Shown here: positions 16,948-54,307 of the stretch, piece after piece
How positions within the stretch are numbered: position 1 is the stretch's first letter
Layout of the letters: the number at the start of each line of letters is the position of its first letter
NCBI GenBank assembly: GCA_965637545.1
Contig: OZ281496.1
Span: 8,246,001-8,310,000 of the forward strand
Reading direction: 5' to 3'
DNA length: 64,000 nt
Origin: Phallusia mammillata
Lineage: Eukaryota
Position numbers and translations under genes: made by a program
The notes under the pieces: generated by a model
Seen by the model: the letters and a program-made list of their open reading frames with translations, nothing else
The model's database searches: none
Told to the model about the DNA's origin: nothing

Positions 16948-19900
16948 TTATCGATAAAATATCATAATTGTCGAATCCAAATCTCTCTGAGAATGAGCAT
17001 ATTCAACTGGAGTCGTTTTGTTCAACGTAGTTTCTGGCAATCCGTTCCAATCTATTTTTAAATTACAATTTTTGACAGACACAATGTTACGGTGTTAAAC
17101 AAAACAATTACTTGTAAAGTCATTGCAGTCTTCACAGTTGGAAAATCTGGATTGTTCATTCCTCCAATACACACAAACTCACTTCGCCAATCGTTCACTC
17201 TGAACAATTTACGTTTTTTTATAAAGTAATATTTAAAATAATGAATACTTCAGGTGTGACATTTAGCAGTAATTTTGTTTGGAAAAGAATCTTTTTTACA
17301 TATTGCTGGGTCACAAAGCTTTCAAATCAGACGTATTAATTTATGGTTTGTTTGGAAAAGAGTTCCAATGTCGACGCTAAGGATTTTTTGATGAGCAATT
17401 ACACTTGCAACACTTTTGTTCTGACTGTAATTTTTTGTATTGCAGTTGAACCTACGCCATTATGTTAACTACATTTTTTTTTTAAATGTAACAATATTAT
17501 AAAAGTCAGGTTGGATATTAACTTTGTTAAAGTATCACTAGATGGTATAGGCACCATAGATCTTATCGATTTAACGGATTTTGTTAACCCTTGACAAAAA
17601 AGTTTTTTTCAGTCGGTTGAAAGTACAATATATCAAAAAAAGCTTACATGAATACTGTCTATTTTAGTAATAAACCCGTTTTAGGTATATTTGTATGACA
17701 GCTGCACTAACTTAACAGCAGGACACATTGCATAGACGCTTCCATGTTTTCCATAAGCACGAAAATGAACAAAACCGGTAGGTAGAGGCTTCACACTTGG
17801 TGGCAGCATCGAGTTAACCACAGAATCGTTTCCGATCGAAAATTGAACTGGTACTGAAAGCACGTCTTCCTCATAAGAGCAATCTGGACCTTAAAAAATA
17901 AATCAGTAGGTTTGTCACCAATAAATCTAGTTATAGAATACACGCTAGAGCCAGATAGTTAAAAAAACAAACAATAAATCCAATGATTTTTAGATCAATT
18001 CAGTTATTATTGAAAAATCTTTATTAATTAACAAAAGCTTGGTAATACAACAAAGACCGTTTGCGTAACGTTGGTGGTTGCAAAACTCACAAAAATCACT
18101 TTCCGAAATTACTTCCAATATTTTGTAGGTAAAAGCGTTGACCTCTGTTTCTAATATTAAATCTCCAGTTTTCCTAAACACAGAATTAACATGACTAGCT
18201 GTTTTACTTAGTTTCAAGCGTTTTCATCACCAGTATACCTGGAAATCATTGTGTAACCAAGTAGAGTGTTGGACAACGGTGTATATATTTTCAACCCATA
18301 AAAGTATGATTTGCTAGTTGTACTAGTTTTCAATTCTAGCTTTGGGTTTCCTGATGATTTCCATGTCTATGTATAAAAGACAAGTTTATTAAAAAACTCC
18401 GTAAAATTGGTTTATCTGTCAAGTTTGGAATCGAAAATATCATTTTCTGGGCTGCGCCCCCAAAGTTAGATATCGTATATTGTTGACGAACTTTTTTGTA
18501 AGTTGAAATAAAATTTGTATTTTCAACACACGTCACATGTCTATACCCTCTGGTCAAATAAATAAGCGAATAAGTACCCGGTGATTATTGTAAAAGAAAC
18601 TTTCAATGTACCTGTGTGTTAAAAATGTAAAACATAATGTCACAGAAGCTGGCAGTTGTTGATCTGTTTCTACATGATGGTTCATAATGTAAAAAGAAAT
18701 TGTCGAGAGTGTGATTTCCTTCGTACCAAAGGATCGAAAACCATGTGGCTATAGACACCAAAATCATGGAATAATTTAAACTGGGCAATATGCAAGTGCT
18801 GCATTCACTTACCCCAAAAGAGACATATTTCAAAGAGGGATCAAAATCTCCTATAGCAAACAAGGCAAAGAATGGATGCATTTTTCGACTCGATTGCATT
18901 ATATTGTCCTGATCACATCTTTATTGTATACAGGAAAAGTAAATCACGTGGTACAACAAAAAAACATCCTACATTTCACCAACCTATGATCTAATCCGTA
19001 ATGTGCATGGTGATTAGGACACCTTGTTTTGTAATTAAATGAACAAAATAGACAATCTTGACAATATGGATGATTCGGATTATATGCTCCTCTTGCGCTA
19101 AAATCGACCTGTACAAACACATTTTTTAGTCGAACAAACATGGCAATTTTGTTAACTTACCCTCATTCCGTAACGTTCCCCGACAATTCCCTATCGTGCA
19201 GCTCATAAGCATGAGTACCATAGTCATAAAAATAGTAGTCAGAAATTAAATTTGTGAAGTCTGTAGATTTTTCCTCAAGTCTATCCAACATCGATTTTAC
19301 ATCGGGATAAAACTCTTAAATTAAAAACAAAACCGTCAACCTATTACACAGCCATAAATTGTTGGAAGTACCATTCCCTTGCTGTAATGGATAATGAAAA
19401 TTGTAAATTTTATGCAAATTCCCCCCATAATTTTGCGTAAATCCGTTCACTGATTGATATTGCAAAATACTCATCTCTCTGCTGACCTCCAGTGGTGTTA
19501 GGTTTTGAACATGACGTAAGATTATGTCTTGTTCCTAAACAAGCACAATGTTTCAAAGCGTTTCAAACTATTTTGCATTTTACAAAATTTTTTTTACATG
19601 GTATTCGAAATAAGCCTGGCTTTTAAAATCCATTTTTGTACAGGTATCAAATGTTCCAAAAGTGTTTGTGTTCATCCAATTCTAAAGTTCTGAAAATTAA
19701 AACTTAAAACAGTTTTTAACCTTTGGGCAATCTACCTTACCCAAGACTGCACTATTGTTGCTTGAAGTCAGAAACCACAAATTACTATAAGATTCTACAT
19801 AAGTAAAACTATTGTTGTTGATAGTTGCCGCGAAAATCCATCCACCACCAGCAGCTTTCATGTCAAAATAAGCCTTGACAAAATGTAAAAAAAGATAGAC

Positions 19901-22298
19901 GGATACTAATGTTTTTGGAAAAGGTTGCTCATTGTACATAAGATAATCAAACATTTATGAAATGCCTAAATGCAGTTTTGTTTCCTTATTCCGCTCACCG
20001 GAACAATTAAAGAAGTTTCAACATATACACAAGAAAAAAAATACAAAGTGCACCTTACAAAGACAAAAAGTTTGATCAGAAAAGATCTCAATGTCCATTT
20101 TGAAGCTATTTTGATTTACGAAAAACAAAAATTAAAAACGAAATCGATTATTAACCACACAAACTGTTTCTGTATAATACCTACTTCAAGCGATTTGTGT
20201 AACGATTGTATAACGTAGATTCCATCTTGAAACCCAGCATCTGTCAGTTCAACACATGAACGGGCAGAGTTAGGGAAAGTACCAAGCGGTGGTTTTATTG
20301 TCATGTGTTCTGTTGCGTTAAAAGCTGGGTGTTCAAATGTCTGCGGTCCTCCAAAGCCATCTAAAATCGTTAAGGTATGATATAACTTATTTTGAAACAG
20401 TATTTTATTTACTTACTTGGTTGTTTATAAAGAATAAATATGCCAAAAGTTAGTCCCAAAGCAGCCAGGACTCCAACCACACACACCAAAATTATAATCA
20501 CATGTAACAACTTCTGATTCTTTGGATGCTTTTCCGGGCGCATGGTAACAATTTCTGTTAAAAAAACATTAGTACATGTCGTTTCCTATCCAGGTTTGCA
20601 CCATATCTGATATCTGCCTTGATTAATACGTTTGGGAAACGTTAAACCAACAAAGGGCCAAAATCATTCTACAGCTGTTTTAACTAGATTTAAACCGAAT
20701 TCTGGTCTCCGTTATTAATTTTACCACATTGTACGCATCAATGCAGGTTAACTCACTTTTTGAAAGAAATGAAAGGTGTTGCGATTTTGACACATGCTAA
20801 ATATTATACTGGGTAAAGAAACGTTTGTCAGTTAAACCCACTGTAAACGCGATGTTTAAACGGTTGTTCTGTGTTTGCCACTTTCATATAAGCGTGGCAC
20901 ACATCGAAACATTATCGGCCAATCGTTACTACGTCATGCTGCAGTAAAGAGAAACTGCAATCGATCGTTATGGTGTGGTTAAGATTTAAAAAAACGACAC
21001 TGAGACCAACCTTACCTAATGCACTACTTTTTTGTTTGTAGTTGTTTCTCCAGTAGTAAATTTTCCATTTTTTCCGCCTTGCTTTATTTTATACGCACTT
21101 ATTGTTGTGTTATGTTTGTTCGATTTTTTGAACCTTGATTTTTATGTACATCACAGCACACCAACCAGGTTACCATTTTGTACGAAACCCCAGCCGTTAT
21201 CATGTGGTTGATTTGTTTTTACCTAGGTTTACTCAACAATATATTTGTTTTGAATATGAATTCTAGGTATAATTCAACAAATATTTGTCCACAGCAAACC
21301 AAAATATTTTTGTAATTGTCTAAAAGCCCTTGTTATAAGGTTGCACATACAAATCGCCTAAAGCCCTCATATACAGTATACATTGCTAAGTTGACTTATT
21401 TGCGCTGAATAACGTTGCAAAGTTGCGCAGCTATTGAGGACCTAATGATTGTTAATGTAAAACTATTTTGTGAACTTTCAACAAGTGAAATCAATCGTTT
21501 AAACATCACAATGCAACCACCGAATATCTCAGCATGTATTAAAGCCTGTAATATTGTGTAGTAGGATTTGAGGTTTTGTCTGTATCACTGCTGGTTTTGT
21601 CTGTAAATATTTAGGACATTAAAAGATATGAAATGTAATGCGAGTGCTTTAAATTAAACCTGATTGAGAAACTTTTGTAAGTTAAGTCGACTATGACACG
21701 CAACATTAAGTGACTGCCACTTAAAAGGTCACATGACTCACATTAGCTTGCCCTACATCAAAACAATAATGATTGTACTTTTGGCTAATCGTTACTACGT
21801 CACCCTGCAGTGTCGAGAAACTGAATCATTGTTAAAGCCGCTATGGTGTGGGTTGGATTGTAATAATCAACACTAAAATGAATCCCAATTTTTGCACTAG
21901 CACCTCGTCTGCACGAATTTTCCCCTGGTAAATTTTTCGCTTTTTTTCGTATTGCCTTTTACGCACTACTTGATATTTTATGTTTGTTCGATTTTGTAAA
22001 GCTTATTTTATGTGTACGTCACAACACGAATTAGGTGATCATTCTGCTTAAAACCCTAGCTGTTCTTGTGTAGAATTTCTTGTAAGTTTTAAAACTTGAG
22101 TTGTACACACCCTGGGATGTACTATATATATCCTGATGACGACGCCTCGAACCAGACATCTAGTTTTAGGCTGAGTTATTTCAATTTCACTGGAAAGAAT
22201 ATACCTGATTGATTTGTTTCCACTTCCGGAATGTTTTTTCGCTGAAGCTCAATAACTTCGTAAGATACAGGATCATTATTTACATAATTATTAGACAT
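16948..22298 (-). pseudogene. Type II TM split-intelectin receptor, copy A (probable pseudogene)
   Basis: Exons are collinear with copy C: first exon 22205-22298 (MSNNYVNNDPVSYEVI...), TM exon ~20418-20555, then RSC..L...G..DG, YFDM..GGGW, NWMNTNTFG, GPDC...FRAYG and IMIFYR*. Lesions: in-frame TAG at 19682-19684; exon 19161-19314 is 154 nt versus 155 in B/C; exon 17112-17199 is 88 nt versus 89; frame disrupted near 18740. Confidence 0.8.
20915..22060. repeat. Diverged ~300-bp direct duplication (~20915-21210 and ~21780-22060) in the intron after copy A exon 1
   Basis: Shared blocks aatcgttactacgtca, gagaaactg, tatggtgtgg and ttatgtttgttcgatttt. Confidence 0.65.
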
Positions 22299-24426
22299 CT
22301 TGGACTGTTTTAGAATCCTGAAAATAACAGAAATCCTGAAAAGCTAGTCATTACTGAATATAATACGCAGCGTCTGTTTTTTTCTGACATCGTTCAAGTC
22401 GAATTTATTTACCGTCTAAAAAAAATTGTTCTCAGTGCCGGATCAAGGCTCTGCTGGCATGTAGGCACATTTTATAAGTGGCCCGAAAACTAGGGTTGCC
22501 AACAAAAAAATTAGAATTTCATTCTACTGATTTTAAAGTGGCCTGGATTTTTGACTGGCCTGTAAGCACGGGCCTACTTTGCATAATGGTTGGTATTGAC
22601 AAACAACAACAAGAAACAAAAAATGATTGACTTGTAGCAATTTTACGGTTAATTTTGAAGTTGTACTTTGAATATGTATATACGAATAACCGAACCTTAA
22701 ACAGGTTGTAGCTGAATATATCTCCGCATTTAGCTTAACTAAGTAAATAAATCAAAGGTGACATTTTTCAACAGTGACACAAACAACATATATGATAAAA
22801 TTATTTTGCAAAACATTAATATTACAGCAACAACATACTTATTATTTTACGAATAGCTTGTAACTTAAATAAAGCTTACTGCAAACTGAACTGGATGAAA
22901 TATCAGAAATATCTGTCTTTACCACCCTTTCAGCACTTACATATCCACGATATGAACTCATGTACATTGGAACACTTTATAAAACGCTATAGCGAGAAAC
23001 TTTATTGCGGTGCACAATTACATATCCTTACAGATGATTCAAATCAGAAACTCAGTAGACATGATTGAAAGTAGAAACTAGATGACGGTCATTCCTTTAT
23101 TAATGATATCGAACACATACGACCCAGCTCGAACGCCAGTGATGCCAAGGTTCAATCAGTAAACACAATTGTTTTTGAAGCTTAAAATCATCCTTGGGCC
23201 CCAGAATTGAAAAAAAAAAACGAATTTAGTTAAACAAGCTGATAATTTACTTGCCCCGACACTCACCCACCTTTTATTTATTTTCTTACAAACCATTTAT
23301 TGTTCGTTGTATATGGACTTTACTGATATGGTCATTGCAAAAATAAGTTTTGAACTTCAAACTACCTAGCATACTTGTTTTAATTGATTGAGTTTGTCTT
23401 TGATGTCAGTCAGAGAACAGTGGTTAAATAATCATACGATAAATTAATACGTAATAGGAGCGTGGTCTTTACCGCAGGTCACAACGCGTACAAGCTTTTC
23501 TACGGACCGTGTCATACTTTGTGAATCATATTTCTGTCTACACTATAACGTGCCATATGCTACAGGACGGTGTTAGTGCAGATAATACAACAAGTAGCAT
23601 CGCTTCATCACAAATTTAAGCTATCGTTTGAAATTAGTATACTAATTAAATTTGGTTTGACATGATACAATATTCAGCAAAATTGTCTGTAACGTTTCCA
23701 AATTTTTTTTAACTGATTGTGAACAAGGTGGTATTTGGATGAGAAATGTATTGATCAAAATGGTATTGCTTTTAACAGCTCTAAATGGTACAAAATCTGA
23801 CAAAGAAAATTGTAACATGTTAAATAAGTTATACTTTATTCCCGATTGTCTCTGTGTGGCTTGGACAAAAATAACTCCGTGCTGTCAACTATTTCGCAGT
23901 AATATTAAATTATTTATGTGACTAGGTGCTTTAGGAAGTGGCTATTAGATAATTTCTCAATAAATTGTTTCTCACCGAGTAAGAAACTAATTAAAAAAAA
24001 TTGATGGATTGAACTAATATAAATAAAAGTCAATAATGGTCAAATCGATCTGTAAAGGTCCGGTAGCTCAACGACTAGGAGACTGTGAGAAGACAAATGC
24101 AAGGGTTGTCTGTCGGCAGTAGGCAAACAAATAAACTGTTGCCAACCTGATTAAAAAATATACATATTTTAGCGCAAAAAATCGGGATCAGTTGTCGGAA
24201 AAATCGGCAAAAAACTTGGTGGAAAAAAATAGATAGAGAAAAGCCAAAATGGCGTCGTACTTTACCTGAATCTGTTTGCTTTCTAACCTTTATCTTGTTG
24301 AAGCTGACAGAAAAAAAAACTTGTGACCTATAATTTTGTCCTCCAAGTCATTTCTGTCTCAACAAGCAAACCAGTTATAATTATAAAGTCACGAATTTAA
24401 ACCGCAAAAAAATGCTTGAAGCCCAC

Positions 24427-24523
24427 CTGGTTTGCTTTTAAGTTTTAATTTCAACGCTTGTCCTTCTTTAATTCCGACCGTTTCGTAAGTGTCATCACCA
24501 TGATTTACGTAAATATGCGCCAT
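24427..24523 (-). pseudogene. Orphan first coding exon (copy D) of the split-intelectin receptor family
   Basis: MAHIYVNHGDDTYETVGIKEGQALKLKLKSKP with a phase-1 GT donor. It is 97 nt, the same as copy C exon 1 (MAHTYVN...). No matching TM or lectin exons were found before copy A. Confidence 0.7.
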
Positions 24524-25340
24524 AACTAACATAAATTTACAACCTAAAAAGTGTTCTGTTAAAATGTCCATGAATGCAAAACAAACAGAATTAGATGCGA
24601 TTTATAATTATTGTGAGATTTTCAGTTTCATTTACTGTCAACAAATCTAGTTCCTGTTTGGTTTATGTCCTATTGTGGCATCGAACATATGGGTTTGGGC
24701 ATGCTTTTTAGCCTGTTTTTGCCACAAAACGCACGTAGCAGAAACGAACCAAAAAAGGGACCAAAAACCACGTTATACATTACATTATATGTAACAAATG
24801 CTTTGACAACAGCTTCACTGCTGGGTCATTATAAATTAAAACAGTGTGCTCTGACTTTCGCTTAAATATCTTTACTTTGTTGTTAAAACTCTGTCCAAGA
24901 CTGTCTTGTGAAAACAACACTTTCTTTAACATTAGTTGCAATACTAACTTCAAGTTAAACTAGGAATTTAAAAAAAAGTTGTTAGTGAAGGGTTACAGCT
25001 TTTAGTAACGGACACAACGTATCTGCAGCAACAATATGTGCCAGCTTAAACCGAAAGTCTTCGGTCGTTGTGTTACACAAGATGTGTAAAGTTTAATTGG
25101 TAGTAAACCCTTACAAACGGGTATTGTTACATTCGGTCAATGTCAATAGAGATTCCGAAATGTCGATAATAAACAGCGTTTGTGTTAAGCAATTGAACAG
25201 CCTGCGTATTTCTTGATCGCAGACAAAACCGACTTGAAATTGTACTTACGTGCTTGTGTAATAACACTCTTAATTTTACTTTTGCGAATATCTATTTGCA
25301 AATACACAGCAGTTTAAATACAGTTGCAGAACCTTTAAAC

Positions 25341-25880
25341 CAGGGAGTCGAACCGCTTGTCATATGGGTTCAGGTTCGGTTCGGGTTCACTTGGTTTTGT
25401 TTTTAAGGGTTCGGGTTCAGGTCCGGTTTTTAAAAATGTATATTTTCGGGTTCGGGTTTTGTTCTGGTTTGGGCAAATTATCCGGTCCGAACCGGTTTGC
25501 GGTTTTTAAACCGGTTCAAATTTTTATTCGTTTTAATTTAATTCTACCCATCAACTACCTGGCCATATCAAACGCCAAAATAATTTTGCCCGTGTGCTGT
25601 TATTTTTGACACGCCCTATATAGCGCACTGAAGACTACGCGAGATAACACATATATATGTGTGCGCTGTTTTGAACAAAAAATCATAAAATATAAAACAG
25701 ACTGCATTTTTTACTGGTTCGGTTCCGGTTCAGGTCCAACGCCAAACAAAATATAGGGTTCAACTCCGGTTCGGGTTTTAAGAAAATCGTAGTTAGCGGT
25801 TCGGGTTCGGTTCGGGTTTAATGAAATTAACCGCTCAAACCGGTTTGCGGGTTCGGGTTCAGTTCCGGTTCGACTCCCTG
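25341..25880. mobile_element. Young hAT-type MITE
   Basis: Perfect 15-bp TIR CAGGGAGTCGAACCG / CGGTTCGACTCCCTG, perfect 8-bp TSD CTTTAAAC (25333-25340, 25881-25888) and many GGTTCG/AACCGG subterminal repeats. Confidence 0.92.
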
Positions 25881-27250
25881 CTTTAAACAAAGAGATATCT
25901 GAAGATTGTGGTAATTGATTCAATACATTTTTTTGCTTTTCTTTGTAAACAAACCAAGTTGAAGAATAAAAAGGCATTGTAAAAAAATGCAAATGTTTGT
26001 TTTGCAACTCCTCAGAACGCGTTTCTCTCCTCTTGCAACCAAGCAAGGTAGCACGAACAATTATCAAAGTGTCAGGAAGAGTCGTAAACCTCCAGCCAAC
26101 ATCAAGCATCATGCTCAGAGGAACCCGCCGCGTCTCAATTGTAGTATATGTACTGCCGAAGCAAGTATCGCATTTGAGGTTTTGTCATACCTGGTTGACG
26201 TATTTATGACACACACTATCGAAATGATCCCTAAAAGTATGATCTTAACGTTTGCAAATTAGTTCAGCAATAAGAATGAGGTGAAATTGTTTATGATTGT
26301 GGTGTGCTAATAATTTACATGCTTTGATTTCATATTCAACTTCACTTGTATTCGTTGGGTTCAAATTCCATCACGGTTCAGAAATTCAGAACCACGTCTT
26401 GCTACACTTTATTAGTTGAAATCTTGTCCCTAATTACAGGAATTCATTTACTTATACGCACATACAAACATTTGGTGATAGTATTATTTGAAACCATATT
26501 TCGAAATGTTGCTTTCTAAACGTGAAAAATCATAGATTGCAAAATTATTTCAGAAAAATGTTATATAGTTCATGCTTTACTACTTTACACTATTGTTTTG
26601 TGTTTACTGCCCACCCTTTTTTTCATGCAACAGTGTCTGCTTCATTTGGATTACGTTTTCAAGATACTTAGTGTAGGAATGATCTCCAAAAACACCTTTG
26701 TTTACGAATTTAGCAACCGATTGTATCTAAACTTTAACGGCCAGATATCCCAAATCTTTGCTCACTTGTTAAGAACGTTTTGTAGATTGGTTTTCAAGCT
26801 ATACAAGCAAATCGGGTTGCTGTGTCGAATGTATACGCCGTAAAATATTTATCGGTTGTAAATCTGATCCGATCTTTTTTTTAATTTTCACACAATCCAG
26901 GTTTACTTCAAGATAGTTTTATATTTACTTTGTCATGTATTGTATGCTATTATTTTTTCGGTTCAATTTGAAAAAAGTTTGGAATTTAAGAATGACAAAA
27001 AGTTTTCATCAAATTTAATAAGGACTGTGTTAAATTTTATATTGTAACTAAACTAATTGAACAAGCAACGTCTCTTTGTTTGTGGACATGTGTTTAACTC
27101 GGTTATATTGTACTGTAATAACAGCTGCGGGTGGTTTTCATCATAACAAAGTGTCAAAAAAGTCCGGAAACAAACGGTTGTTAAAAACTCGATTGTCGAG
27201 TTATATTCTAGTAATGGTTTGATGTTTCCTGTTCGTCAATTCCACTGAAA

Positions 27251-27397
27251 TCAGATACAATACGTGAGACGAGATCGGTTACAAATCCTAGCAAAACAAG
27301 TGTTATTAAGTCCTGGCCTGAACGGACTCAAAATATTATCTGCCTTTACATTTGCAACAAGAAAGAACATGAGAAAAACTAAAATATTCAAAGGCAT
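27251..27397 (-). CDS. Possible small secreted peptide, or first exon of an unknown gene
   Basis: MPLNILVFLMFFLVANVKA-DNILSPFRPGLNNTCFARICNRSRLTYCI*. The N-terminus resembles a signal peptide with a V-K-A cleavage site. No other support. Confidence 0.3.
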   Translation of the reverse strand: MPLNILVFLMFFLVANVKADNILSPFRPGLNNTCFARICNRSRLTYCI

Positions 27398-27728
27398 TTC
27401 CCGCAACGTTTTTTTTTTCGAAAACATAATTATTTTTGATATAATTGCCTTTAACTTGTCAAACAATAGGTACATTTAAAACTGGATGTATATTAGCCAT
27501 TATGTAGTAATTTTCGAGGGAATTAGCACACGCAGTTTGTAGGAACGATTTAAGCAGTGATGATAACGAAAACATCATCTACGTTATATACACACCAGAC
27601 TGGTTTCAGCTCAGCTACGTGTCGATTAACGAACATTTAAATGATCAGCAATTATATAATCTGAATTTTTATGTATAGAAACAGATCAATTTTGCGATAA
27701 AAAACCAGCGCACTAATTCAAGACATAT

Positions 27729-30700
27729 TTATCGATAAAATATCATAATTGTTGAATCCAAATCTCTCTTAGCATGAGCATAATCAACTGGAATCGTTTC
27801 GTTCAACAAGGTTCCTGGTAATCCGTTCCAATCTATATTAATTAACACAAACTAAATATATTACTAAACAACTATAAAATGGTATCTTTAATTAAATCAC
27901 GCTAAATTACTGGTGAAATCATTGCAGTCATCCAAGTAGGTAGAATCCGGGTTTTTCATTCCTCCAAAACAAACAAATTCGCTTCTCCAATCGTTAACCC
28001 TAAATAAATTACGAGAATGAAATCCTGTAAATTATTAAACTAATTATTAGGTATAAAAATAAACTGTGTCAACTACGTTTTTTTTAAAACGTTTTTTTTT
28101 AACAGAAGTGTCGCAATGTCACATAGCCATTTGTTCAATATTGCTGCAGAAAACGTAAACCAAATATACAATAAACGAAACTAATAAAAAAGCTTCATAA
28201 ACTATAGTATTTAGGGATCCAACCAAGTCAAATGACGACCCATTTGGTATTCAGATCAGGGGATTGGGGTGCACCGCACTGAACGAATGGATGCACGATT
28301 GGGTGTAACAGAATAGCGATAACCTTGTTAGCGATGGGGTGCTTGGTTTAGGCACGAGTATGTCCAACTACTTACTTAACAGCAGGACACAATGCGTAGA
28401 CGCTTCCAGTTCTTCCATAAGCACGAAACTGAATAAAACCGGTCGGGAGAGGTTTTACACTTGGTGGCAGCATCGAGTTAGCCACTGAATCGTTTCCGAT
28501 AGAAAATTGAACTGGTACTGAAAGTACGTCATCATCATAATAACAATCCGGACCTGAAGCAAAAAAAAAGAAAACGTGTGAAAGCCTTTTGGTTACTGAC
28601 TGGAAATGCACCTGCGATTTTAGAACCGGATTAATCGCGTACATTTTTGATATATTCACATGAATATCACTTCATAAAAAATTGAAACAATGTGCATCAT
28701 CTGTTAGTAAAAACTTTCGTTAACAAAACAAACAATGCTTTTAGATAGCATAGGATTTTTTTACTCACAAAAGTCAGTTTCTGAAATAATTTCCAATATT
28801 TTGTAGGTAACAGCGTTGATCTCTGTTTCAGGTATCATGACACCACTTTTTCTAGAAATAAAGTCAAAAATAACAACAGAATTTCGATGTCTGTGTTAGT
28901 AATACCACTACACACTGAGCAGTGAACAACAATTTACCTTGCAATCATTGTGTAACCACAAAGTGTGTTGGATGCAGCTTCACGAATTGTCCATCCAAAA
29001 TAATAATGAGTTGAATATGTGCTGTTGTACAATTCTGTGGTTGGCATTCCAGATGGCTTCCAAATGTATGTCGTAAACATTAAAAAATAGTAAGTCCTTT
29101 AACAAACGAACTCCTAAATGCTTAAGTTTAAACAAGGGGAAAATCATACAGCTAAAAACGCAAAGACTAAATTAATTTTCTGATGGTGCAAAAAAGTTCA
29201 AAGGTGGCAAACCCAACATACCTCATTTTTAATGACGTAAAACCAAACATCACACAAGCTTGCATTCAAAGTCCCGTTCCTACATTGTGCTTCATAATGG
29301 AAAAATAAATTGTTAAAGGTGTGATTTCCGTTGTACGCAACTGTTGAATCAGTATCTGGTCGATAAGCAAGAACCTAAAATATTAAAAGATTACGTGCAT
29401 TGTTTTATTTAACAATGTACGACCGCACTATTTCCTTACCCTTAATTTGAAATAGTCGAAACAGTTGTCAAAGTTTCCCATAACAAACAAGGCAAAAAAT
29501 GGATGCATTTTTCGACTCGATTGCATCGTGTTGCCAAGATCGCATCTTTATTGTTTGGCAGTAAAGTAAATATAAGATACAACAAAAAGGCAGGATATTT
29601 TTTACCAACCTATAATCCAATCCGTACGGAGAACATTTTCGATGTGTGTAGGTGTAAATCTGTATCATCCATTTTAGTTTTTTTTTAAAAACAAAAAAAT
29701 AGAATTTCAATAAGCAAACTTACTTCCATTCCATACCTTTCACCATACAGATTATTATCATGCAACTTATCAACTTGAGAACCATAAACATAGAAATAGA
29801 AATCAGTAATTACACTTGTGATTTCTATAGACTTAGCAGCACGTCGATCCAACATCGAATATACATCGGGGTAAAAAGCTAAAAAGTAGGAATGGAAATT
29901 ATGACTTCGGACCAAACCTACACAGCTTAACTATTTGTAAATCGCTTTAAAAAAATTGACTCCTATTGCAAGTTAGTTTATGTTTGCTTTTGTATCAGTC
30001 AGAAATGCCATCCGTGAATTATAAAAATATATAAAATTCTTCCTACATTTACATTTAAAATGCTTTTTTTACATTATAAGTTTTTTTTTACAGTCAGGTT
30101 TTGTGTCAGAAGTCCTGCAGGCAATCGGTTATACCTATTTATGAAAACAAAAACCATAACAGAAAACATTTTTCTCACTAATTTTTGGTTTCAGTGAATA
30201 GTGGTGATTAAAAATTCTATGCAAATTTCCTCCATAAGTTTCTAAAAATCCATTTGCCGATTGATATTGAAGGAAACTCTGCTCTCTGCTGACTACCAGT
30301 GGTGTTTGGTTTAAAACATGACGCAGCATTATGTCTTTTCCTTGTAAATTTTCTTAGTAATAAGATCAAAACAAATGTCTTTTTACAAACAATTTTTGCC
30401 TGATATTCAAAATAAGCTTGATTTTTAAAATCTGATCTTGTACAAGTAGCAAATGTTCCAAATGTATTTGTGTTCATCCAGTTTTGGTAATCTGAAATTA
30501 AAATGGTGGTCGGTGTTTGGATATCATGCTGTAAATCTAGTTTACCGTAAACAGCTTGATCTTTGTTTGACGTCGTAAGAAACCACATATCAGCATAAGT
30601 TTCTGTAGTACTAAAATTATTGTCGCTAATAGTGGCCGCGAGAATCCATCCACCACCAGCAGCTTTCATGTCACAATAAGCCTGAGGACAAGAGAAATGG

Positions 30701-33067
30701 AAACTAAGGTGATGTTACACCCAATGAGGACAAATACCGATTACTATGCTCCATTTTTTTGTTCACACAGATGTTATAAATACGACATACTCCAAAGTGA
30801 AATTTCTTGTCCTTTCAATTAAGAAGTCGACCCTAACCAACTACATTGAGTTCACATAATTGCAAATCACTTCAAAAAATACGCGTATCTTTCATGTTAA
30901 TCTTTCACAACAAGCTTTGGAAACAAGACCGACACCCCAATAAACTACTTGATACTTGAAACGATTTGAGTGATGGTTGTATGACGTAGATTCCATCTTT
31001 GAATCCAGCATCTCTCAGTTCAACACAAGAACGGGCAGGATTGGGGAAAGTACCGAGCGGTGGTTTTGTAGTCGCAGATTCAGTTGTATCGTAAGTTGTT
31101 TGTTTTGTTATATGTGCTGCTATCACCATGCAAAGACATTCTCAATTAGGAAGTAGGAGAAAAATAATGTAACTGCCAAAATGTCCATTTGTTAAAGTAT
31201 AATCTGTTCCTTTAGCCAATGTTCTCTTAGTGGTCTAAAAGAGTCCATTACGTAACCTCTGACAATCGGTTACCATGAAAACGTGGCTGCGGTCTATCGT
31301 TTGAAGCAACAATATTGGAAATTTGTAAATACACTCCCCAATTATTCTTTACACAAATGAAAACAAGAAGAAAGTATGAGGTTCTATAAATACCGAATGC
31401 TTATTATGACCAGAACTTAAGGGGGTCGATTAACAGAGTTCAATACACTCATTAGACCATGCAATTTGTTAAAACTCGATCAGAATATAAGAAAGAAAGA
31501 TCAGAAATGTAGTGCAGACTTAACCTCACAGCTTATACCACAAACACTTGAAACGTGAACCAATGCTTGATTTTAGAAAATAATTAACTTCAACACAATA
31601 AAGGAAACTTTTTTGTGTGACAAAATCGTTATAAATTAGACGTAGTTTCAATTGTTCTTTGCTAAAAAAAATCTCGTCGGCAAGAACAGTTTTGAAAAAC
31701 AAATAGTAAAGGCATTTTGTTGCAAACACTTTTACAATGTTTGACTTACCTTGGGAAGCTTCTTTGTTTGCTTTCTGAAATAGCAAACATAATAAGTCAA
31801 TAGCATTAGGACACAAAGCACACTTCATTTAGTTTATGTGACATTACACACCTGGTCTTTTTGGAAATGAAGTATTCCCAAAACTAGTCCCAAAGCAGCC
31901 AGGATTATAACTGCAAACACCAAAATCTTATTCATGTTAAAAGTTTTTTGATGACATGACGAATTTTTACTTTGTTTGCCGCTTGATTGTGTTGCAACAA
32001 CCTCTGCATAATAAGTACAGCATTCTATAGATTAGATAATTATGTAGACAACACAAGCTTTTATTAAATATGCAAGAAAAAATCTAATTCAACAGTTTTA
32101 TGCAAAACAAAGGCTAGAAAAAGTTATAAAATTAAAATTCAAGAGCCATATCAAATTGAGTATAAATTTTAGTTGCCTTTACTGCACTGTGATTTGGGCA
32201 TACATGGTAATACGGAACATAACACAAAAAAAGTATGAAAAACCTACCAAAATCTTGCACAGTTGTTACTGTGGGTCTAATTGCATCAATATTTTCTTCA
32301 CGTACACGTTTTCTTCACGCTGAAGGTTGAGCAAACATGTTTGTTAATACTCTTTGATCATCTTGTTCTGAAAACAAAAGTATTGAAGTTAATATTTATT
32401 TTTTACCCCACAAATTTTGGTCTGTTTTATTTAATTGAAGAAGTACACGTATGGTCGCATTTTAGACTTCAACATTTGATTATGTTGTTTGTTAAGCACA
32501 ACAAGTTGTGATGAACAATACCTATTTTGTTTGAACACTCAAAAGCACAGCAAGCTCAAATCTATGCTTTAGGGTAGGGGTGCATAACATGCAGCCACGT
32601 AGACGAATTTATGTGGCCGTAAACATGTGTATCAAAGTTCACGTACTGGCGACCGTGAATGGATTAAACCTCTTTTGCAGGACATTAAGCTTTTGCTGGA
32701 ATGGAAACATTTAGTTTTTGCTGACATGGAAAAACATATTATATCGCCCCAGACTTATTGTACGCATACTATTTGCAAACAAATTAACAAACAAGCAAAC
32801 ACACAACGTAACAATATACAACGGGGACATTTGGTCGTTGGTAAAATATACGATTTGTCCGTAATGGCGAAACGGTTGTGCACTTCCGATTTAGGGCTAA
32901 ATTTGGTAACATTTAATTGCAACCTTTTTCATAAAACAACACATATCTGTTCAAATAAAATGTTTACCTGTTTCCTTTGGAATAGTTTGAGCTTGTCGAA
33001 GTTGTTCTTCATTAAATTCAATTGATTCGTAGGTCACAGGGTCATTATTCACATATGCCTGAGACAT
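27729..33067 (-). pseudogene. Type II TM split-intelectin receptor, copy B (probably disabled)
   Basis: All 17 exon equivalents are present: first exon 32968-33067 (MSQAYVNNDPVTYESI...), TM exon 31852-32003, microexon 31750-31774, last exon 27729-27832. Lesions: in-frame TGA at 32315-32317 in exon 2 (skippable, phase 1-1); exon 8 acceptor one base out of phase (~30340); exon 13 acceptor is AC instead of AG (29067). Confidence 0.75.
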
Positions 33068-34777
33068 GTCTAACCTTATCAATTGCATGTAGCTGCAAGC
33101 ACACAAATGTGAAAGGTCTGAGTTTTGATGGTAACAGTTACTTGCTTTAAACCAACTTAATTCGCTCAAAAGACCATAGGTATTAATATGAAAAACGGTT
33201 TTTAACTGGTTAAAACCCATGCGTATATTTGCAAATTTTCACGTGATTTTTAATGGGTACAAGACTTTACTGTTACTTAAGCCTTCTTACAAAGTCACCC
33301 TGCTTGCAGATAAACTACCTCCGCCATGGTGGGCAGAAATATTAGTCAAAACAAACAGTGCCACATAAAACGACCGCAAATTCAATGCCTTTGTGTAGCC
33401 ATGATGCTGCGAATATACTACATGAATGGCAAGTGACAGTTTATTTTGATAAGCGCAGTTCGACGGTTGGGAGGTTGCCCAACTTGTTGATTCAGCTGTT
33501 TCGTGTTTTCGTTCTTGCCACATTAAGTTGAACTTGGTACTCTATGTCCAGGGTCTTGAAACATTGTTTGTCAAGTCAAAAATTGATTCGTATTATTATT
33601 TTAGGTCAAAATTTTATTTCGTAGCAATGTCAAAAAAGTTATGCATGTATTATTATTTTACCTAACAGTGGATAATTGCTTAATTGCTACTCATGTATAA
33701 ACACAAAAAATGACTTCGTTCGTCGGGTAGTGTGTACCTACCTCCAGGTACATTGTATTAGGGGAATTAGATATTAGCGAATTTTATTGAGTAAAAATTG
33801 CTTGTTAAAATCGTACATTCGACGCGTTACTAAATAAATCTTACATTAGGAAAACACCTGCGTAACTAATATATGTTTTTTTTTAGATAAGACCACTTTT
33901 TTTTCTTTTTTTTTCAGATTGGATATTTGATGGGCAATAACTTTAGTGTATAACTATAACATAACATTTGTTTTTCCCATTTATCTGAACTTCACGTTGG
34001 CAATAACTGTGTATCACTAAATGAAATATCTGGTAAACTTTATACTTCTGTGTATTTGCCAATAACTGTTATGCTTTGAATCACTGTCGGAATGAAAATA
34101 GTTGCAAATTTTGTCAAAAGTTATTTTGTTTGACGGAGAACGGACGCACAACCTAACGAGTGAACTAGTAGAATGGGAAATGTTCTAAAATATCTAAGCC
34201 GCAGTAATGAATCCGAATTCTCAAATGACGAAGTAGCTTTCACATATCTGTTGCGTGTTATTTCCTGTTAGGTTTATATTTGTCATAAATGTGTTTTATA
34301 CTACATTGTAACCTGTCAACAAATTTACCAATCGCCTGATGGCGGTTTTCTGGATTAAAGAGTAACTTTCGTCACAAGGACATATACTTCTTTCTGATGT
34401 ATAACGAGCTTTCCGACTTTCAGCAAATTAATCCAAACAATCGGTATGTCAGGCCTTTTCAATTCAAGTGACTTGGTAGATCGAATTAATCAACACGAAA
34501 CCATTTTTACATATTCTGCCTAATGTAGTGATTTTTGATTAAAGCAGATGAAATATAACAGAGAATTAGCACATACAGTTTGTACGCGGTTTAATCAGTG
34601 ATAATCTATCATCATCTACAATTTTCCATTATATATCGAACTTGAGTATTTAAGTATCAGAATTGAGTCAGGAAACACGGGTGGTCAAGATTTCAATGAA
34701 AATCGAATACATCAGCAGAATTTTTACATATAATTTTGCGATGACAAGCACTGAAAGTGACCCGATTCAAATCCTAT

Positions 34778-37700
34778 TTAGCGATAAAATATCATAATTG
34801 TTGAATCCAGGTCTCTCAGAGAATGAGCATAATCAACTGGAATCGTTTCGTTCAACAAGGTTCCTTGATATCCGTTCCAATCTACATTAAACAGAAACAC
34901 ATTTTTTAAACAAACAAATGTTGAGAAAACTATTATTTACTTGTAAAATCATTGCAGTCATCTAAATAGGGAGAATCTGGATTCTTCATTCCACCAATAC
35001 AAACAAATTCGCTTCTCCAATCTTTCACCCTAAATAAATAACAAATATTTTTGCTGCACGAATGCGTTAGTCAAAACGTCAAAGTATACAATAAGCGGTA
35101 CTCCGTTGTCGAATAGCTTCATGAACTATTGCAATCGACGACCCAACTAAATAACCACTCATTTTTAAATCGACACTTGGGAGTTTGGGTGCGCCGCACT
35201 AAACGATTGTTTAAATGCACGGATTATTCAAATATGGAAGGGTGTGATTGGAAAACATGGAGATGCCTCGTTTAACGAGAACGGTCGGTATTTGTTGCAG
35301 CTGTGCTGTAGCAACGGACTTAGCATCATGAACACCTTTTTCCAACACAGAGATGTTCACAAGTATACTTGGTATAGACCTAGTTTGGGGCAAAGATCTT
35401 TGATAGATTTTTACATTGTGTCGACTGACTTATTTTCTGATGTGTTGGACGTTCGAGTCAAACGCAGTGCTGAATTGTCAACTGATCACCACCTAGTGGT
35501 ATGTTCCTTACGATTTTGCGATCCTTGGCATAACAAGAAAATCCGTAAGTCAACCGTGGCATATAGGATCAAATGGGAGGCTTTGGAAGACAAAGAAGTA
35601 AGGAAGAAGTTTGCATCGAGCATGTCATCAAAGTTCAGACAACTTCCAGATGTATCTGAGGACATTGAGATGGAATGGGAATCATTCAAAACAGCCATAA
35701 TTTCTTCTGCTGCGGAAAGTTGCGGGCGAAAACGACTCAGAGTAACGAAGAACAAAAAGAAAACACCTTGGTGGAATGAGGATGTGAAACAAGTGATTAG
35801 TGCAAAGAAGGAGGCTTATAGGGCTTTGTTGCAACACAGGTCTTCATCTGAATTACAATCGCGTTACTCGGAAGCGCGGAGAGCTGCCACTTTAGCAGTT
35901 AAAAAGTCCAAAGAGAAATCTTGGGAGGAGTTTGGTCGACAGTTGGATTCCAACTACACATCGGCAAATAAAGTATTTTGGCAGACCATACGCCGTTTGC
36001 GTGGTAAGAGATCAAATGCCACAAGCTACATCAAAGACACAAATGGAAACATCATTCGTGAAGAAAGGGATATACTTGCACGATGGAGAGAATACTTTAA
36101 AGACCTTTTGAACCCAGTAAAGGCAACGCCAATTGATACACAGCAAATAGTCCAACCAGGAGAAGAGGAAGTCTTCACAGCAGTCGAAGTTGCAATAGCA
36201 GTACGAGGGCTAAAATCCGGAAAGGCAGCTGGTGAAGATGAAATCCGACCTGAAATGTTGAAAGCTCTTGGACGGGAAGGAATTCTGTGGTTAACACAAG
36301 TGTGTCAAGTGGCGTGGAAACTTGGCAAGACACCTAAAGACTGGCAAACGGGCGTAGTTATTCCCATTTTTAAAAAAGGCGATCGTAAGGAATGCACGAA
36401 CTACAGAGGAATATCGTTGCTTAGTTTGCCAGGAAAGGTGTATGCCAAATGCCTTGAACGAAAATGCCGAGAAATAGTGGAAACAAAACTGGAGGAGGGC
36501 CAGTGTGGTTTTCGTCCTGGTCGCAGCACTACGGACCAAATCTTCACATTGAAGCAAGTCTTCGAGAAATCATGGGAATATGCCAAAGACGTATTCGCAT
36601 GTTTCGTCGACCTTGAGAAGGCATTTGATCGGATTCCTCGAGAAAAGCTTTGGGGAGTACTACAGGAACATGGCATCAATGGCCAGCTGTTGCTGGCCAT
36701 AAAATCATTTTACAATCAGCCCGAGGTTTGTGTTCGCGTGAACGGCAAACAAACTAAACCATTCCATGTGGGGGTTGGTCTTCGGCAAGGATGTGTATTG
36801 TCACCACTCCTTTTCGTTATCTACATGAACTGGATTGACAAGTGCAGCCTAACTGATGATTGTGTCACGATTGGAAGCTTTAAAATTAGTCGTTTGCTTT
36901 TTGCAGTGATGGGAGACAAGACACCGAAATTGATTTTAGAACTGGAAAAGCAAGCTCTGTGATAAGGGCATTGCAGTTTTCGGTTGTCATGAAACGAGAA
37001 TTGTCAAAGAAGGCGAAGATGGCGATATTTAAAACCATCTTCATTCCCATACTCACTTATGGTCATGAGGCGTGGATCATGACCGAGAAGGTGCGATCAC
37101 AACTACAAGCATCTGAAATGAGGTTTTTGCGTAGGGTTGAACGGGTTACTTTACTTGACAAAGTACGTAGCTCCGAAATCCGCAAATCTCTGAGCGTCGA
37201 TCCTCTACTTCTCAAAATCGAACGATCCCAGCTGAAATGGTTTGGCCATGTTAACAGAATGCCTCAGAAAAGGCTTCCCAAACAATCTCTGTTTGCAAAA
37301 CCAAAAGGGAAGCGGCCCACTGGACGACCTCGAACTCGATGGTTAGATCAAGTTAAAAGCCTGTCCTGGAATCCCTTGGGAATTTATCCGGATGAACTGA
37401 AGGAAGTGGTGACTGACCGTGAAGTGTGGAGGCTCAATCGTGAGCTGCTGCCCCCGCGACCCTTAAAAGGATTAAGCGGGAAAGAAAAATGATGAATGAT
37501 GATGATTATTCAAATACATGAGTTATTAGCTCAAGAACCGTAATCTGGTTAGGTGCACGGTAGTAAGTTATCCACGAGTGCACCTAACTACCAATGTGTA
37601 AAAGCATTCTTACTCACTTAACAGCAGGACACATTGCGTAGACGCTCCCAGTTCTTCCATAAGCACGAAACTGAACAAAACCGGTCGGTAGAGGTTTTAC

Positions 37701-40700
37701 ACTTGGTGGCAACATCGAGTTAACCACTGAATCGTTTCCGATTGAAAATTGAACTGGTACTGAAAGCACGTCATCATCATACAAGCAACCTGGACCTGAA
37801 ACAACAAGCTTTTTCAAATTGTTGTAAAGCATAAGTTCTCAGTTGCATCAAATTATTTACTCACAAAAGTCAGTTTCTGTAATGATTTCCAATATTTTGT
37901 ACGTTGCAGCTTTAATCTCAGTTTCGGTTATTAAAACTCCATTTCTCCTACCAATTAAAATCGATTTTAGAAAAGTATTTTATTACAATGTTTGTTAGTA
38001 CAATGCCAAACCCTTCCTATTACCTTGAAATCATTGTGTAACCAAAAACTATATTTGATACAGCATTTTTAATTGACCATTCGAAAAAATAACTATTGCC
38101 GACGGGGTTGTATAAACTGATAATAGGCGTTCCAGATGATTTCCAAAGCTAAAAAGAAAAAAGTTAGAAATAAAAAAAAATACTAAGTTTTTATTAAGTT
38201 ATATCTTTTATTTATATAGGCAATCTTATAATATTTGTTTAGAAGAAAATAATGCAGGAAATATTTTCGTCTATGCTATCAAATTCAGAATTTGCAAATG
38301 TGTGTAAACTGCAGTGTAACTCAAGTAACAATTACCAAAAACAATTTTTAGTTTTTTATTGATTATCAGAAATTAATCGACAATCTTTTGGCTTTAAAAT
38401 AAATTTGAAGGTACGTATTAAAAACAATTCCAGTCATAACTGTATTATATTACCTGCGTAAACTCCGTGACTTGAAACTATCTACTGATATTAGGTAAAA
38501 CAAAGGTAAAACGTACCTCTGGATTATTGACATAAAACCAAACATCACACAAGCTGGCATATGACGTTCCATTTCTACATTGCGATTGAAAATGCAAAAA
38601 GAAATCGTTGATAGTGTGGTTTCCCTCGTAGAGAACTACTGAATCAGTTACTGGTCTTTGACTGTATAACTAAAACGAACAAAGTTTAAATGGATAATTG
38701 AAAAATGTCATAACGCAGTATAAACGTACTTCGAAATTCATGTAATCAAAACAGTGGTCAAAATTTCCGATACCAAACAAAGCAAAAAAGGGACGCATTT
38801 TTCGACTTGAACTCATTATGTTTCCAATGCCGCATCTTTTACAGTTGATTATTTAGTTAAATTTTAACAACAACAAAATTGCAATTTAAACATACGTAGC
38901 ATCCAAATCATAATACACATAACGATTATAATGATCAGAACAATCTATTTGATATTCGTATGGATAATTGCAACGATGTCTTGTGTAGAATCTGACCTGA
39001 ACAAACACTTTTGTTATAATTTCCTTGATCATATCAGAATGGCAATAGCATACCCTCATTCCGTAATTGTTTCCAAACAATTGACTATCATCCATCAAAT
39101 AAGAATGAGAACCATAGTTGTAAAAATAGTAATCAGTAATTAAACTCGTGATTTCTGTGGATTTTTTCTCAAGTCGATTCAACATTGAATTCACATCAGG
39201 ATAAAAAACTTTAAGCAAACATAAAACTTGCTTTAGTTTAGAGCGAATTAATTTACCAAAGTTGGGAAGATTCCCTGCATACGTTTTTTAGAGTTCAACC
39301 GCAGGCTAATATACACTTACTGTTAAAATACAGAAATTCATACATAATTATTTAGCGATTGGGACTTTCAACATTTATACTTTAGTGCACTTTAAAGGCA
39401 ATCAGTAATGCTGAGAGGTACATAATCTTATATTTGCAAAAGCTACATTTAAGGGTATTTCTTACCATTCTTGGAACTTATTTGATATCGAGAATTAAAC
39501 ATTTTTTGCATATTTCCTCCATAAAATTGCATAAATCCGTTCTCTGTTTGATATTGCAAAAAACTTTGCTCTCTGCTGATCTCTAGTGGTGTTTGGTTTA
39601 AAACATGACGTAACATAACATCTTTTCCCTGAAATTGATTTTTCCATTGTAAAAAATGGGTTAAGTCACTTTTTATCAATATTTGCCTGATATTCAAAAT
39701 AAGCTTGACTTTTAAAATCTGATCGTGTACAAGTAGAAAATGTTCCAAATGCGTTTGTGTTCATCCAATTTTGGTAATCTGGAATTCAAGAAGCACGTAA
39801 AATGTTTTCTTGCATTAGTACAATATAACTTACCTATAATATTATCGTTGTTGTTTGACGATGTAACAAACCACAAATCACTATAAATTTCTTCTAAACT
39901 TAAATCATTGTCGTTGATAGTTGCAGCGAGAATCCATCCACCACCACCAGCAACCATGTCACAGTAAACCTGTAAACAAAACTCGTTCGTAAGAGTACAT
40001 TTGTTATTCTAAAAGTTGCAATGATGTCATTGATGGATTGTCAGAAAAAAAAGACAGACCATCTTTTTTTACATTAAAGGCAGAATTCTCGTTAAAGGCA
40101 AAATTGTAAACAACTCTCAGACGCCAGGCCCAGTGAAGGCCTTTCACCGACTTAGCCGGTCACCAGATATTTTCCACATAGATTTTTCGGTATAACGCCA
40201 ACAATAGGCCTGGCGTGCTGTCATTTATATATGTGTGTGCCGTGATTGCTGGTGTGCATGAACGCTTCCGGGCTGGTCTGCAATCAAGTAAACATCGTCA
40301 TAAAATATAATTCCACACCTCAAACGATTTGAGTGACGGTTGTATGACGTAAATTCCATCTTTGAAGCCTGTGTCTCTCAGTTGAATACATGAACGAGCA
40401 GGATTTGGGAAAGTACCGAGCGGTGATTTTGTTGTCTCAGATTCTGTTGTGTTCAGAGTTGTTTGTCCTGTTGTCGGCGGTGCTGAGCAATACAGAAATT
40501 AAATTAAATATATCCTTTATTCATGCAAAACTACGACAACTTTGTCTAAGTGGCTCCTTCAGCAAATTTTTTATTCAGTTGTGTTTACAGTTGTTTGTCC
40601 AGTTGTCTGTGGTGCTGAGCAACAGAAACACTATTTTTAATGAAACTTTTAGTTCTACAACACTGCACTAACTTTATTTAAGTTTTCAACCTCCCGTAAT

Positions 40701-53398: not shown

Positions 53399-54111
53399 TG
53401 TTACATCTCCACGTTCAGTTACGCATGATTAACTTGTCTCATTATTCCACTGCTATGACGTTACAATCGCCATGTGCGTAACAGTAAAATTAGAAGGCTA
53501 TTGTCTGTATGTTGCAATGATTAGTTCATTTACTGTACAACGTGGTCGAGTAAGGTGATTTATTACTGCATTAAGTAAATTCGTTTGTGTTGCATTTTTA
53601 GAGACGAATAAGGCTAAATTAAATATTGTGACGACTGACTAATTAATCTTCAAGTGAAGGCTGTTTACCGTGATTGTCGGTGAGTGTTTAATTCGATTTG
53701 TGACCTAAATTAATTCATGGCTTTATGTGTGACTTACGGCATGCTGTATTTTCCTATAGTGATTGCAGCGATTGTTTCATCGTCTTGCAACTGTTGATAC
53801 GTGTACTGTACCTGTTGACCTGTGTCGCAAAATAGTTGGTAAGTTAGTCATTGGCATTTTGTGCGTTGGCATATGTCAATGTGTTTCGTTTTCTTGTTTA
53901 GAAAACCGTTCCCGTTCCCGTTTCGTTCTCAACCCTGTTTCTGTCCGTTCCTGATTGTGTACGACGTTGTGGTTGTTGCCGCTGTTGTCGCTGTGGATTA
54001 TTACACGTGATTCGGGAAGTGTGGTTTGTGTGGGAAAGGGCGGGGCGTGTTTCAACGTGACAAACCCCTTTGTGAGGCTCAGCCTTGCAGGTCGGCCGTT
54101 CAGAGTCTACA
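53399..54111 (+). repeat. 5' LTR of the BEL element
   Basis: TGTTACATC...GTCTACA. Same length as the 3' LTR, with no differences seen by eye. Confidence 0.95.
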
Positions 54112-54114
54112 TAA

Positions 54115-54262
54115 AGAAGTTTTCAACTACTGCTCGTTGAAAAAGAAGTTTTCAACTACTGCTCGTTGAAAAAGAAGTTTTCAACTACTGCTCGTTGAAA
54201 AAGAAGTTTTCAACTGTTGCTCGTTGAAAAGGAAGTTTCAACTGTCGCTGATTGAGAGAAGC
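54115..54262 (+). repeat. 29-bp tandem array in the BEL leader, each unit with an 8-bp inverted repeat
   Basis: AGAAG-TTTTCAAC-TACTGCTC-GTTGAAAA three times, then one near-perfect and one degenerate unit. Period is 29 (54115, 54144, 54173, 54202). Confidence 0.92.
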
Positions 54263-54307
54263 TTTCTACTCTTCCTTATTGGAAAGAAGCTGTTGCTTGG
54301 TTAAAAA

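Follow-up and report, generated by a model that had tools for sequence, protein, structure and literature searches.

Intelectins, or X-type lectins, such as human ITLN1 (4WMQ/4WMY), Xenopus XEEL (4WMO/4WN0) and the serum lectin 7E1E, are secreted proteins. Their ectodomain has an N-terminal half that runs through a CDM..GGGW segment, and a C-terminal ..IMIFYR ending is typical for the family. A stretch of 64,000 nucleotides from Phallusia mammillata (assembly GCA_965637545.1, contig OZ281496.1, positions 8,246,001 to 8,310,000 of the forward strand; in the following called the window) contains genes in which the same N-terminal half and the same ending are kept. Self-comparison of the window identified three tandem paralogous genes, all on the minus strand: gene A (about 16950-22300), gene B (about 27730-32030) and gene C (about 34780-41825). 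Unlike intelectins, the proteins encoded by these genes are predicted to be type II membrane-anchored, their lectin fold is interrupted by a domain of ~235 aa, and they belong to a family of what appear to be about 70 or more tandem copies. Moreover, the variable exon of the family, exon 10, lies within the nested domain and not in the lectin part.

The same combination of cytoplasmic tail, transmembrane helix, intelectin part and nested domain is present in the uncharacterised Ciona intestinalis protein LOC100185179 and its relatives (P0004, P0005, P0006, P0013 and P0014). The Ciona insert has the same predicted fold as that of Phallusia, but its exon 10 equivalent is constant, with 18 aa, one Cys and a 4-residue turn, and there are few copies among the database matches. 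In the likewise uncharacterised LOC104266555 proteins P0003 (1914 aa, Phallusia) and P0007 (1724 aa, Ciona) the nested domain occurs in 8 and 7 tandem copies, respectively, with neither a lectin part nor a Cys loop. Their exon 10 region is a short 'IYFxx - turn - xxxYNQT', and they carry DMYDxGN where the receptors have ..FG..YGM. With only 4-10% sequence identity, the predicted fold of the nested domain also resembles the galactose-mutarotase-like supersandwich N-domains of GH65, GH94 and GH116, YidC P1 and the C-domains of heparinases and lyases, with a Z near 9 that is only modestly above background.

The rodent Ly49/NK gene complex, the snail FREPs and the ascidian v-Themis are clustered recognition receptor families of the lectin type with variable loops and a localised variable region. 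The Phallusia genes appear to resemble them in forming a germline multigene cluster with pseudogenes and in having lectin or fibrinogen-related ectodomains, and share with Ly49 the type II topology and Tyr motifs in the cytoplasmic part. However, the folds differ, and neither somatic diversification, nor allelic hypervariability, nor a ratio of nonsynonymous to synonymous divergence (dN/dS) >1 is shown here.

The original prediction, made on A, B and C, had described exon 10 as the one hypervariable exon of the insert, coding for a loop that acts as a specificity determinant. After the analysis described below, we consider it probable that exon 10 encodes an edge strand and an extended loop of the nested domain, which is weakly constrained and plausibly serves as a paralog-specific contact surface. 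In this reading, the exon codes for part of a ~235-aa domain of beta-supersandwich-like fold that sits within the intelectin fold, namely for an edge beta-strand, for a turn starting from a conserved Cys, and for YGLDY, a conserved stretch that leads into the next strand. The data show this anatomy, the variation, the preserved frame and the predicted loop character, and from them the exposure of the loop, its disulfide staple and any role in ligand specificity are inferred. A turn of about 4 residues, as in Ciona and in the free-standing tandem-repeat versions, would have grown in Phallusia to a Tyr-rich loop of 5-25 residues with a second Cys, its length changing via frame-preserving indels that include tandem duplication. 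Held by the frame, the cysteine scaffold and the tail, the loop would otherwise experience less purifying selection than any other part of the domain, which would explain why it differs in almost every paralog.

Borders, frame and length of exon 10

From the genome 30 narrow and 20 wide family loci were sampled, and exon 10 was modelled in the interval that runs from the donor of exon 9 to the acceptor of exon 11. On the minus strand of the window, exon 10 could be placed at 18984-19108 in A, 29610-29659 in B and 38896-38996 in C, in all three exactly as predicted, with AG/GT borders and phase 0 to 2. The frame-1 translations agree with the predicted peptides, including their Cys counts of 4 (A), 1 (B) and 2 (C), and the lengths of 125, 50 and 101 nt indeed differ by multiples of 3, each being 2 mod 3. 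An open phase 0-to-2 solution was obtained for 26/26 resolved loci, 23 of which are non-redundant. In these 23 paralogs the borders are homologous at the nucleotide level, with the acceptor ..ttYag|[AG]T[CT] and the donor TAYGGNTTGGATTAYAG|gt, and given these borders, the chance of finding all copies open is about 1e-22. When splice sites were chosen blind to the frame by a crude consensus score, 8/23 were in frame, which is the chance level. This approach was replaced by border homology and indel spectra, because AT-rich DNA contains too many AG/GT dinucleotides.

The statement that the exon is always in frame holds for exon 10 itself, but not for gene A as a whole. In A, exon 9 (19161-19314) measures only 154 nt to its conserved donor; one nucleotide is deleted near 19182/19183, which results in an in-frame TGA at 19165-19163. 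The length of 155 nt that had been given for exon 9 of B (29878-29724) and C (39054-39208) is confirmed.

Among the non-redundant copies exon 10 is 50 nt (B), 77 nt (two copies), 83 nt (two), 86 nt (three), 89 nt (nine), 92 nt (two), 101 nt (C), 113 nt or 125 nt (A) long. These are nine length classes from 50 to 125 nt with a mode of 89 nt, compared with one to five classes in other exons. In copies that appear intact, the exon is between 77 and 113 nt long, with the same mode. The spread of 125, 50 and 101 nt within the window overstates this family norm, because A and B are aberrant copies. Between close pairs, 6/7 indels in exon 10 are multiples of 3 versus 8/35 in introns 9 and 10, so frame-preserving indels, which the original prediction implied, are observed. 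In the locus L043 the extra 24 nt are a tandem duplication in which 28/31 bases are identical. Similarity searches recovered exons 9 and 11-15 from almost all loci, but exon 10 from no more than the near-identical duplicates and some closely related copies.

Two other arrangements were considered and ruled out. A mutually exclusive exon array of the Dscam type does not fit the interval between exon 9 and exon 11, which spans 178-314 nt and holds one exon. Exon 10 is also not a skippable cassette exon, since every length is 2 mod 3 and skipping would therefore shift the frame.

A profile of exon 12 (A1) was searched against 1.84 billion representatives and gave only ten matches, of which the real ones were all ascidian. 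The P. mammillata proteins P0001, P0018 and P0002, which we take to be mRNA-derived entries, show the predicted exon 10 junctions with lengths of 77 and 89 nt. P0001 has the two final residues of exon 9 at its N-terminus and is identical in 154/154 positions to the loci L032/L033 over exons 10-13, P0018 contains the exon 10 of L026 with one difference and the same junctions, and P0002 has a 26-residue version, again with the same junctions. Read-through into intron 13 as the source of the P0001 C-terminus was rejected on comparison with that intron. If the length differences were artefacts of wrong borders or of pseudogene decay, transcripts would equalise them. The extreme lengths do come from the aberrant genes A and B, and L042, a frameshifted twin of L043, reads 107 nt with a 1-nt frameshift in exon 10. 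However, with borders homologous in all paralogs, three protein entries that use the same junctions and a persisting spread among apparently intact copies, such an artefact is largely refuted and hardly credible.

Variability and selection

Alignments were built without the short exon-10/13/14 fragments, which were misplaced by MAFFT. Exon 10 shows the highest variation of the insert in both length and sequence, with exon 13 not far behind, in agreement, for the most part, with the description of a single hypervariable exon. Among 22 paralogs the mean pairwise identity of exon 10 is 0.42 (0.35 with gaps counted), compared with 0.56-0.64 for exons 9 and 11-14 and 0.91 for exon 15, and its column entropy is 1.76 bits versus 1.02-1.28 in the other insert exons. 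The composition of exon 10 is also distinct, with 18% Tyr, 7.4% Cys and 6% Gln versus 8%, 2% and 1.6% in the rest of the insert. The loop had been described as rich in Tyr, His and Cys; the enrichment of Tyr and Cys extends to the whole family, but His is as frequent in exon 10 (2.5%) as elsewhere in the insert (2.4%). Tyr richness is common to many binding loops.

The pairwise dN/dS of exon 10 is 0.35-0.46 and lies within the range of its neighbours, because the synonymous divergence (dS) is high too. When exon 10 was divided by position, values of 0.75-0.87 were obtained for the strand before Cys1, 0.44-0.68 for the loops and 0.11-0.14 for the tail. A parsimony count on the tree yielded 12.3 changes per codon, the highest of any exon, with a ratio of 0.71. 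In a tree-based analysis at the level of sites, a single site of exon 10 reached an uncorrected p = 0.047, which was lost on correction. Exon 10 is, together with exon 13, the least constrained exon, and positive selection is not demonstrated.

These values bear directly on the proposal that positive or balancing selection actively diversifies the loop, which would be a specificity determinant comparable to a complementarity-determining region (CDR) or a hypervariable region in allorecognition. The concentration of variability in exon 10 is in line with it, as are the Tyr content, the predicted position of the loop on a beta-sandwich and the large clustered family, in which pseudogenes fit the birth and death of genes that is typical for recognition receptors. 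The near-neutral strand before Cys1 could furthermore mask a mixture of constrained and positively selected sites. However, dN/dS is below 1 in all partitions and divergence classes, the tree ratio is no higher than that of exon 13, and the loop, unlike a CDR, does not vary freely but keeps its conserved scaffold and tail and the six cysteines standard for the family. In addition, the database proteins showed no excess of exon 10 differences from the genomic copies in the two comparisons made (0/29 residues for P0001 and L032, 1/29 for P0018 and L026). Of the predicted likeness to a CDR, the localised variability remains and the diversification under selection is not supported, and we regard active diversification of the loop as unlikely.

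The nested domain and its cysteines

The largest open reading frame (ORF) piece of B matched the PDB entries 7e1e, 6usc, 4wmq and 4wmo with E values of 5e-10 to 5e-8. The matches run through the CDM..GGGW segment in the fibrinogen-related, N-terminal half of the ectodomain. Also recognised in the ORF pieces were a cytoplasmic tail at the N-terminus, a single transmembrane helix and, at the C-terminus, the ..IMIFYR ending. On the basis of the intelectin matches, the tail, the single helix and this ending, A, B and C are predicted to be type II membrane intelectin-like genes. The C-terminal exons 15-17, which include the ending, are conserved. The insert interrupts the lectin fold, and a PDB search with exon 15 by itself found nothing. 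Pfam Fibrinogen_C matches were obtained on the Ciona proteins P0004 and P0005. In the literature on intelectins in Phallusia, Ciona and tunicates or with a transmembrane form, no description of the present family was found.

Exons 9-14 encode about 240 residues between the two parts of the lectin fold, and no Pfam family matched any of the insert exons. In P0018 the insert (residues 299-536) aligns over practically its entire length with the eight repeat units of P0003 and the seven of P0007, and it matches Ciona P0004 with 4.5e-30. The insert appears from these alignments to be an autonomous domain of ~235 aa. AlphaFold2 models based on reference-only alignments had a predicted local distance difference test score (pLDDT) of 88.8 and a predicted template modelling score (pTM) of 0.89 for the Phallusia insert, and of 87.9 and 0.88, respectively, for that of Ciona. 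Both models consist of two helices, a beta-sandwich and a C-terminal helix. The best structural neighbours were galactose-mutarotase-like supersandwich domains (Z 9.2-8.0, 170-206 residues aligned), with 5h3z and 7fe3 at the top (VIA Z 9.2, 178-179 residues, root-mean-square deviation 3.9-4.3) and a consistent class of hits. Comparison with the ESM Atlas gave template modelling scores of 0.50-0.56 to supersandwich domains, and a Foldseek search of the insert model against the PDB yielded nothing significant (best E 1.2e-3). The nested domain may be called beta-supersandwich-like, which describes a resemblance in predicted fold and not a shown homology.

When exon 10 was mapped on the Phallusia model, it corresponded to residues 55-84, with a strand at 53-61 followed by a coil at 62-82. 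The coil holds Cys63 and Cys72, and this block has a pLDDT of 62-74, the lowest in the domain interior. The loop may be exposed on the surface. With the two models in register, the conserved Cys is followed by a 4-residue turn in Ciona versus about 13 residues in Phallusia. The peptides of exon 10 share a scaffold that consists of [IV]xFYxxQxC, YPYxY, NC, five or six free residues and YGLDY.

Six cysteines are present across exons 10-12 in 16/22 paralogs. In L024 the exon-11 Cys28 is lost and a third exon-10 Cys is gained, and the totals of five in B and seven in A, the latter after correction for the frame of exon 12, are both odd. The Ciona homolog contains neither the second exon-10 Cys nor Cys28, which suggests that these two residues pair in a disulfide that staples the Phallusia loop. 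The loop extension is lineage-specific and probably disulfide-stapled, tolerates in-frame indels and differs more between paralogs than any other element of the ectodomain.

The pattern of conservation within exon 10 also bears on the explanation that the loop has no function of its own and represents a tolerant turn, in which in-frame changes are nearly neutral and the sole constraint is that the domain downstream stays in frame. In its favour, the strand and the loops have ratios of 0.5-0.9, genes persist with loops anywhere between 5 and 25 residues long, and Ciona does without the extension. On the other hand, most paralogs have retained the second Cys together with the YPYxY and NC motifs, the number of six Cys is maintained and even compensated in L024, and Tyr and Gln are enriched, which indicates constraint beyond the frame. 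A loop without own function is possible on this evidence, but we consider it doubtful.

Some points weigh against the reading of exon 10 as a weakly constrained strand and loop with a plausible contact surface. The 31 members covered, of about 70-85, were picked by the similarity of their exon 15 to copy C, and the splice models of A, B and C are predictions from the genomic sequence. The placement of the loop was read from predicted secondary structure and pLDDT. Moreover, dS is raised in exon 10 (about 1.3), possibly in part by alignment uncertainty, and exon 13 reaches the same tree ratio of 0.71, so that exon 10 is not the sole relaxed element. With these points taken into account, a strand and extended loop of the nested domain is still the explanation that we find probable for exon 10, and a role of the loop in ligand specificity is plausible.

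The gene copies and their genomic cluster

Gene models were built exon by exon, and spliced joins were used solely for the frame check and the tree. Copy C is the only one of the three that is structurally clean: exons 6-17 are in frame at family-conserved splice sites, including a GC donor at intron 7. Exon 7 of C (39687-39778) ends in this donor (CAG|gcaaat, 39685-39686), in agreement with the P0018 junction EYQ|GKD. Homologs of the site are present in L031-L050, and 15/19 paralogs use GC at this position and the rest GT. Exon 9 opens the nested domain with its two helices and is followed by exon 10, which codes for the edge strand, the variable C...C loop and a YDLD tail and is identical in L035. 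Exon 11 (38730-38835, 106 nt) has a constant length of 35 codons in 22/22 paralogs and holds Cys1 and Cys28, and exon 12 (38517-38669, 153 nt) contains the conserved ..CR.G...SLCDVWFYV core that served as the search profile. Exon 13 (38024-38148, 125 nt) is the second least constrained exon by the tree-based ratio, exon 14 (37865-37947, 83 nt) encodes the C-terminal helix of the nested domain, and with exon 15 (37618-37795, 178 nt), which has 91% mean identity among paralogs, the intelectin fold resumes. All these exons lie on the minus strand, as do those of A and B described below.

In copy B the acceptor of intron 7 (30342-30343) is changed from AG to AA, the sole case among 19 paralogs, and the frame is kept only with a shifted donor/acceptor pair at 30387/30334. 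Its exon 10 is the shortest of the family, with a 13-codon deletion that takes out the second Cys. Copy B is splice-defective and doubtful as a gene.

Copy A is a probable pseudogene, because it carries lesions in four exons. The start of exon 7 (19682-19689) has an in-frame TAG at 19684-19682 directly after the conserved acceptor, and exon 9 contains the deletion described above. Exon 12 (18612-18748) has a 16-nt deletion compared with B and C and is in frame only if the donor of exon 11 is shifted by 4 nt. Exon 16 (17111-17199) has a 1-nt deletion, for which the sole in-frame rescue is an implausible 17-nt exon (17199-17183). Exon 10 of A is the longest of the family, and its extra Cys lie within a weak 9-nt periodic stretch.

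Upstream of the transmembrane exon of copy A, two segments of ~290 nt (20917-21198 and 21783-22064) are 68% identical and are possibly duplicated 5' or stalk exons. The stalk is of variable length in the family, with about three Thr-rich 20-aa repeats in P0002 and none in P0018. Conserved Tyr motifs, YVNN and YETI/YEVI, were found in the cytoplasmic tails of C (41766-41837) and A (22239-22310) and in the N-termini of P0002 and P0018. YVNN corresponds to the Grb2-type YxN, and YETI/YEVI follows acidic residues and is reminiscent of type II lectin receptors with a hemITAM or ITIM in the tail.

Two features related to retroelements were observed in the window. On the plus strand, reverse-transcriptase ORFs (35244-37492; RVT_1, 4.8e-25) lie opposite to gene C inside its intron 15, which is 2.6 kb long versus about 380-510 nt in A and B, and the GC content rises to 0.43 at these ORFs. 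At 53399-60848 a BEL/Pao-type long terminal repeat retrotransposon is present, with 713-bp direct repeats (53399-54111 and 60136-60848) that are 100% identical and an uninterrupted ORF of 1911 aa (54308-60043) with matches to Peptidase_A17, an integrase zinc-binding domain, DUF1759 and DUF5641. This element looks like a very recent insertion.

A search of the whole genome with exon 15 of C gave 87 matches, about 65 of them strong and nearly all in C3:5.85-8.37 Mb, and the exon-12 profile gave 82 matches, about ten of them with stops. Taken together, the matches of both exons lie mostly within C3:5.75-8.37 Mb. From these searches the family is estimated at about 70 or more copies (70-85), tandemly expanded and clustered, with pseudogenes among them. 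The orientation of the cluster (C3 5.85-8.37 Mb) switches between 7.42 and 7.51 Mb, with plus-strand genes below and minus-strand genes above, which suggests that half of the cluster has been inverted or arose by inverted duplication. A near-identical duplicate of copy C, L035/L005 (region C3:8372091-8372264), is located about 88 kb away and is 98-100% identical in exons 9-15, and L032, L033 and L034 (6.08, 6.26 and 7.42 Mb) form a near-identical triplet. Both sets are either recent segmental duplications or assembly redundancy. For the same gene pairs, synonymous divergence is 0.5-1.4 in the insert exons but only about 0.23 in exon 15, and the similarity does not extend past the borders of this exon. 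Such a pattern is indicative of homogenisation limited to the exon or of constraint acting on its synonymous sites.

Ascidians are the closest invertebrate relatives of the vertebrates and have no antibodies. This family, which joins a lectin fold, a nested second domain and a membrane anchor in a large birth-and-death cluster, bears on the source of recognition diversity in these animals. The cluster might be the germline-encoded recognition repertoire of a solitary ascidian, made up of type II lectin receptors with Tyr motifs in their tails. On the nested domain, the exon-10 Cys loop and variable parts of exons 9 and 13 would then combine into a CDR-like surface that sets the target of each paralog. 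We put this forward as a speculation that is, on balance, quite improbable. If true, the targets would be a microbial glycan, a self marker or a gamete ligand, and the family would be functionally analogous to the NK lectin-receptor complex of vertebrates, but built on an unrelated fold. If the loop is inert, it would be a clean example of a hairpin turn that grows by in-frame tandem duplication and gains a Cys partner. Exon 10, which is different in nearly every copy, provides an experimental handle on whether this family is a diversified receptor repertoire.

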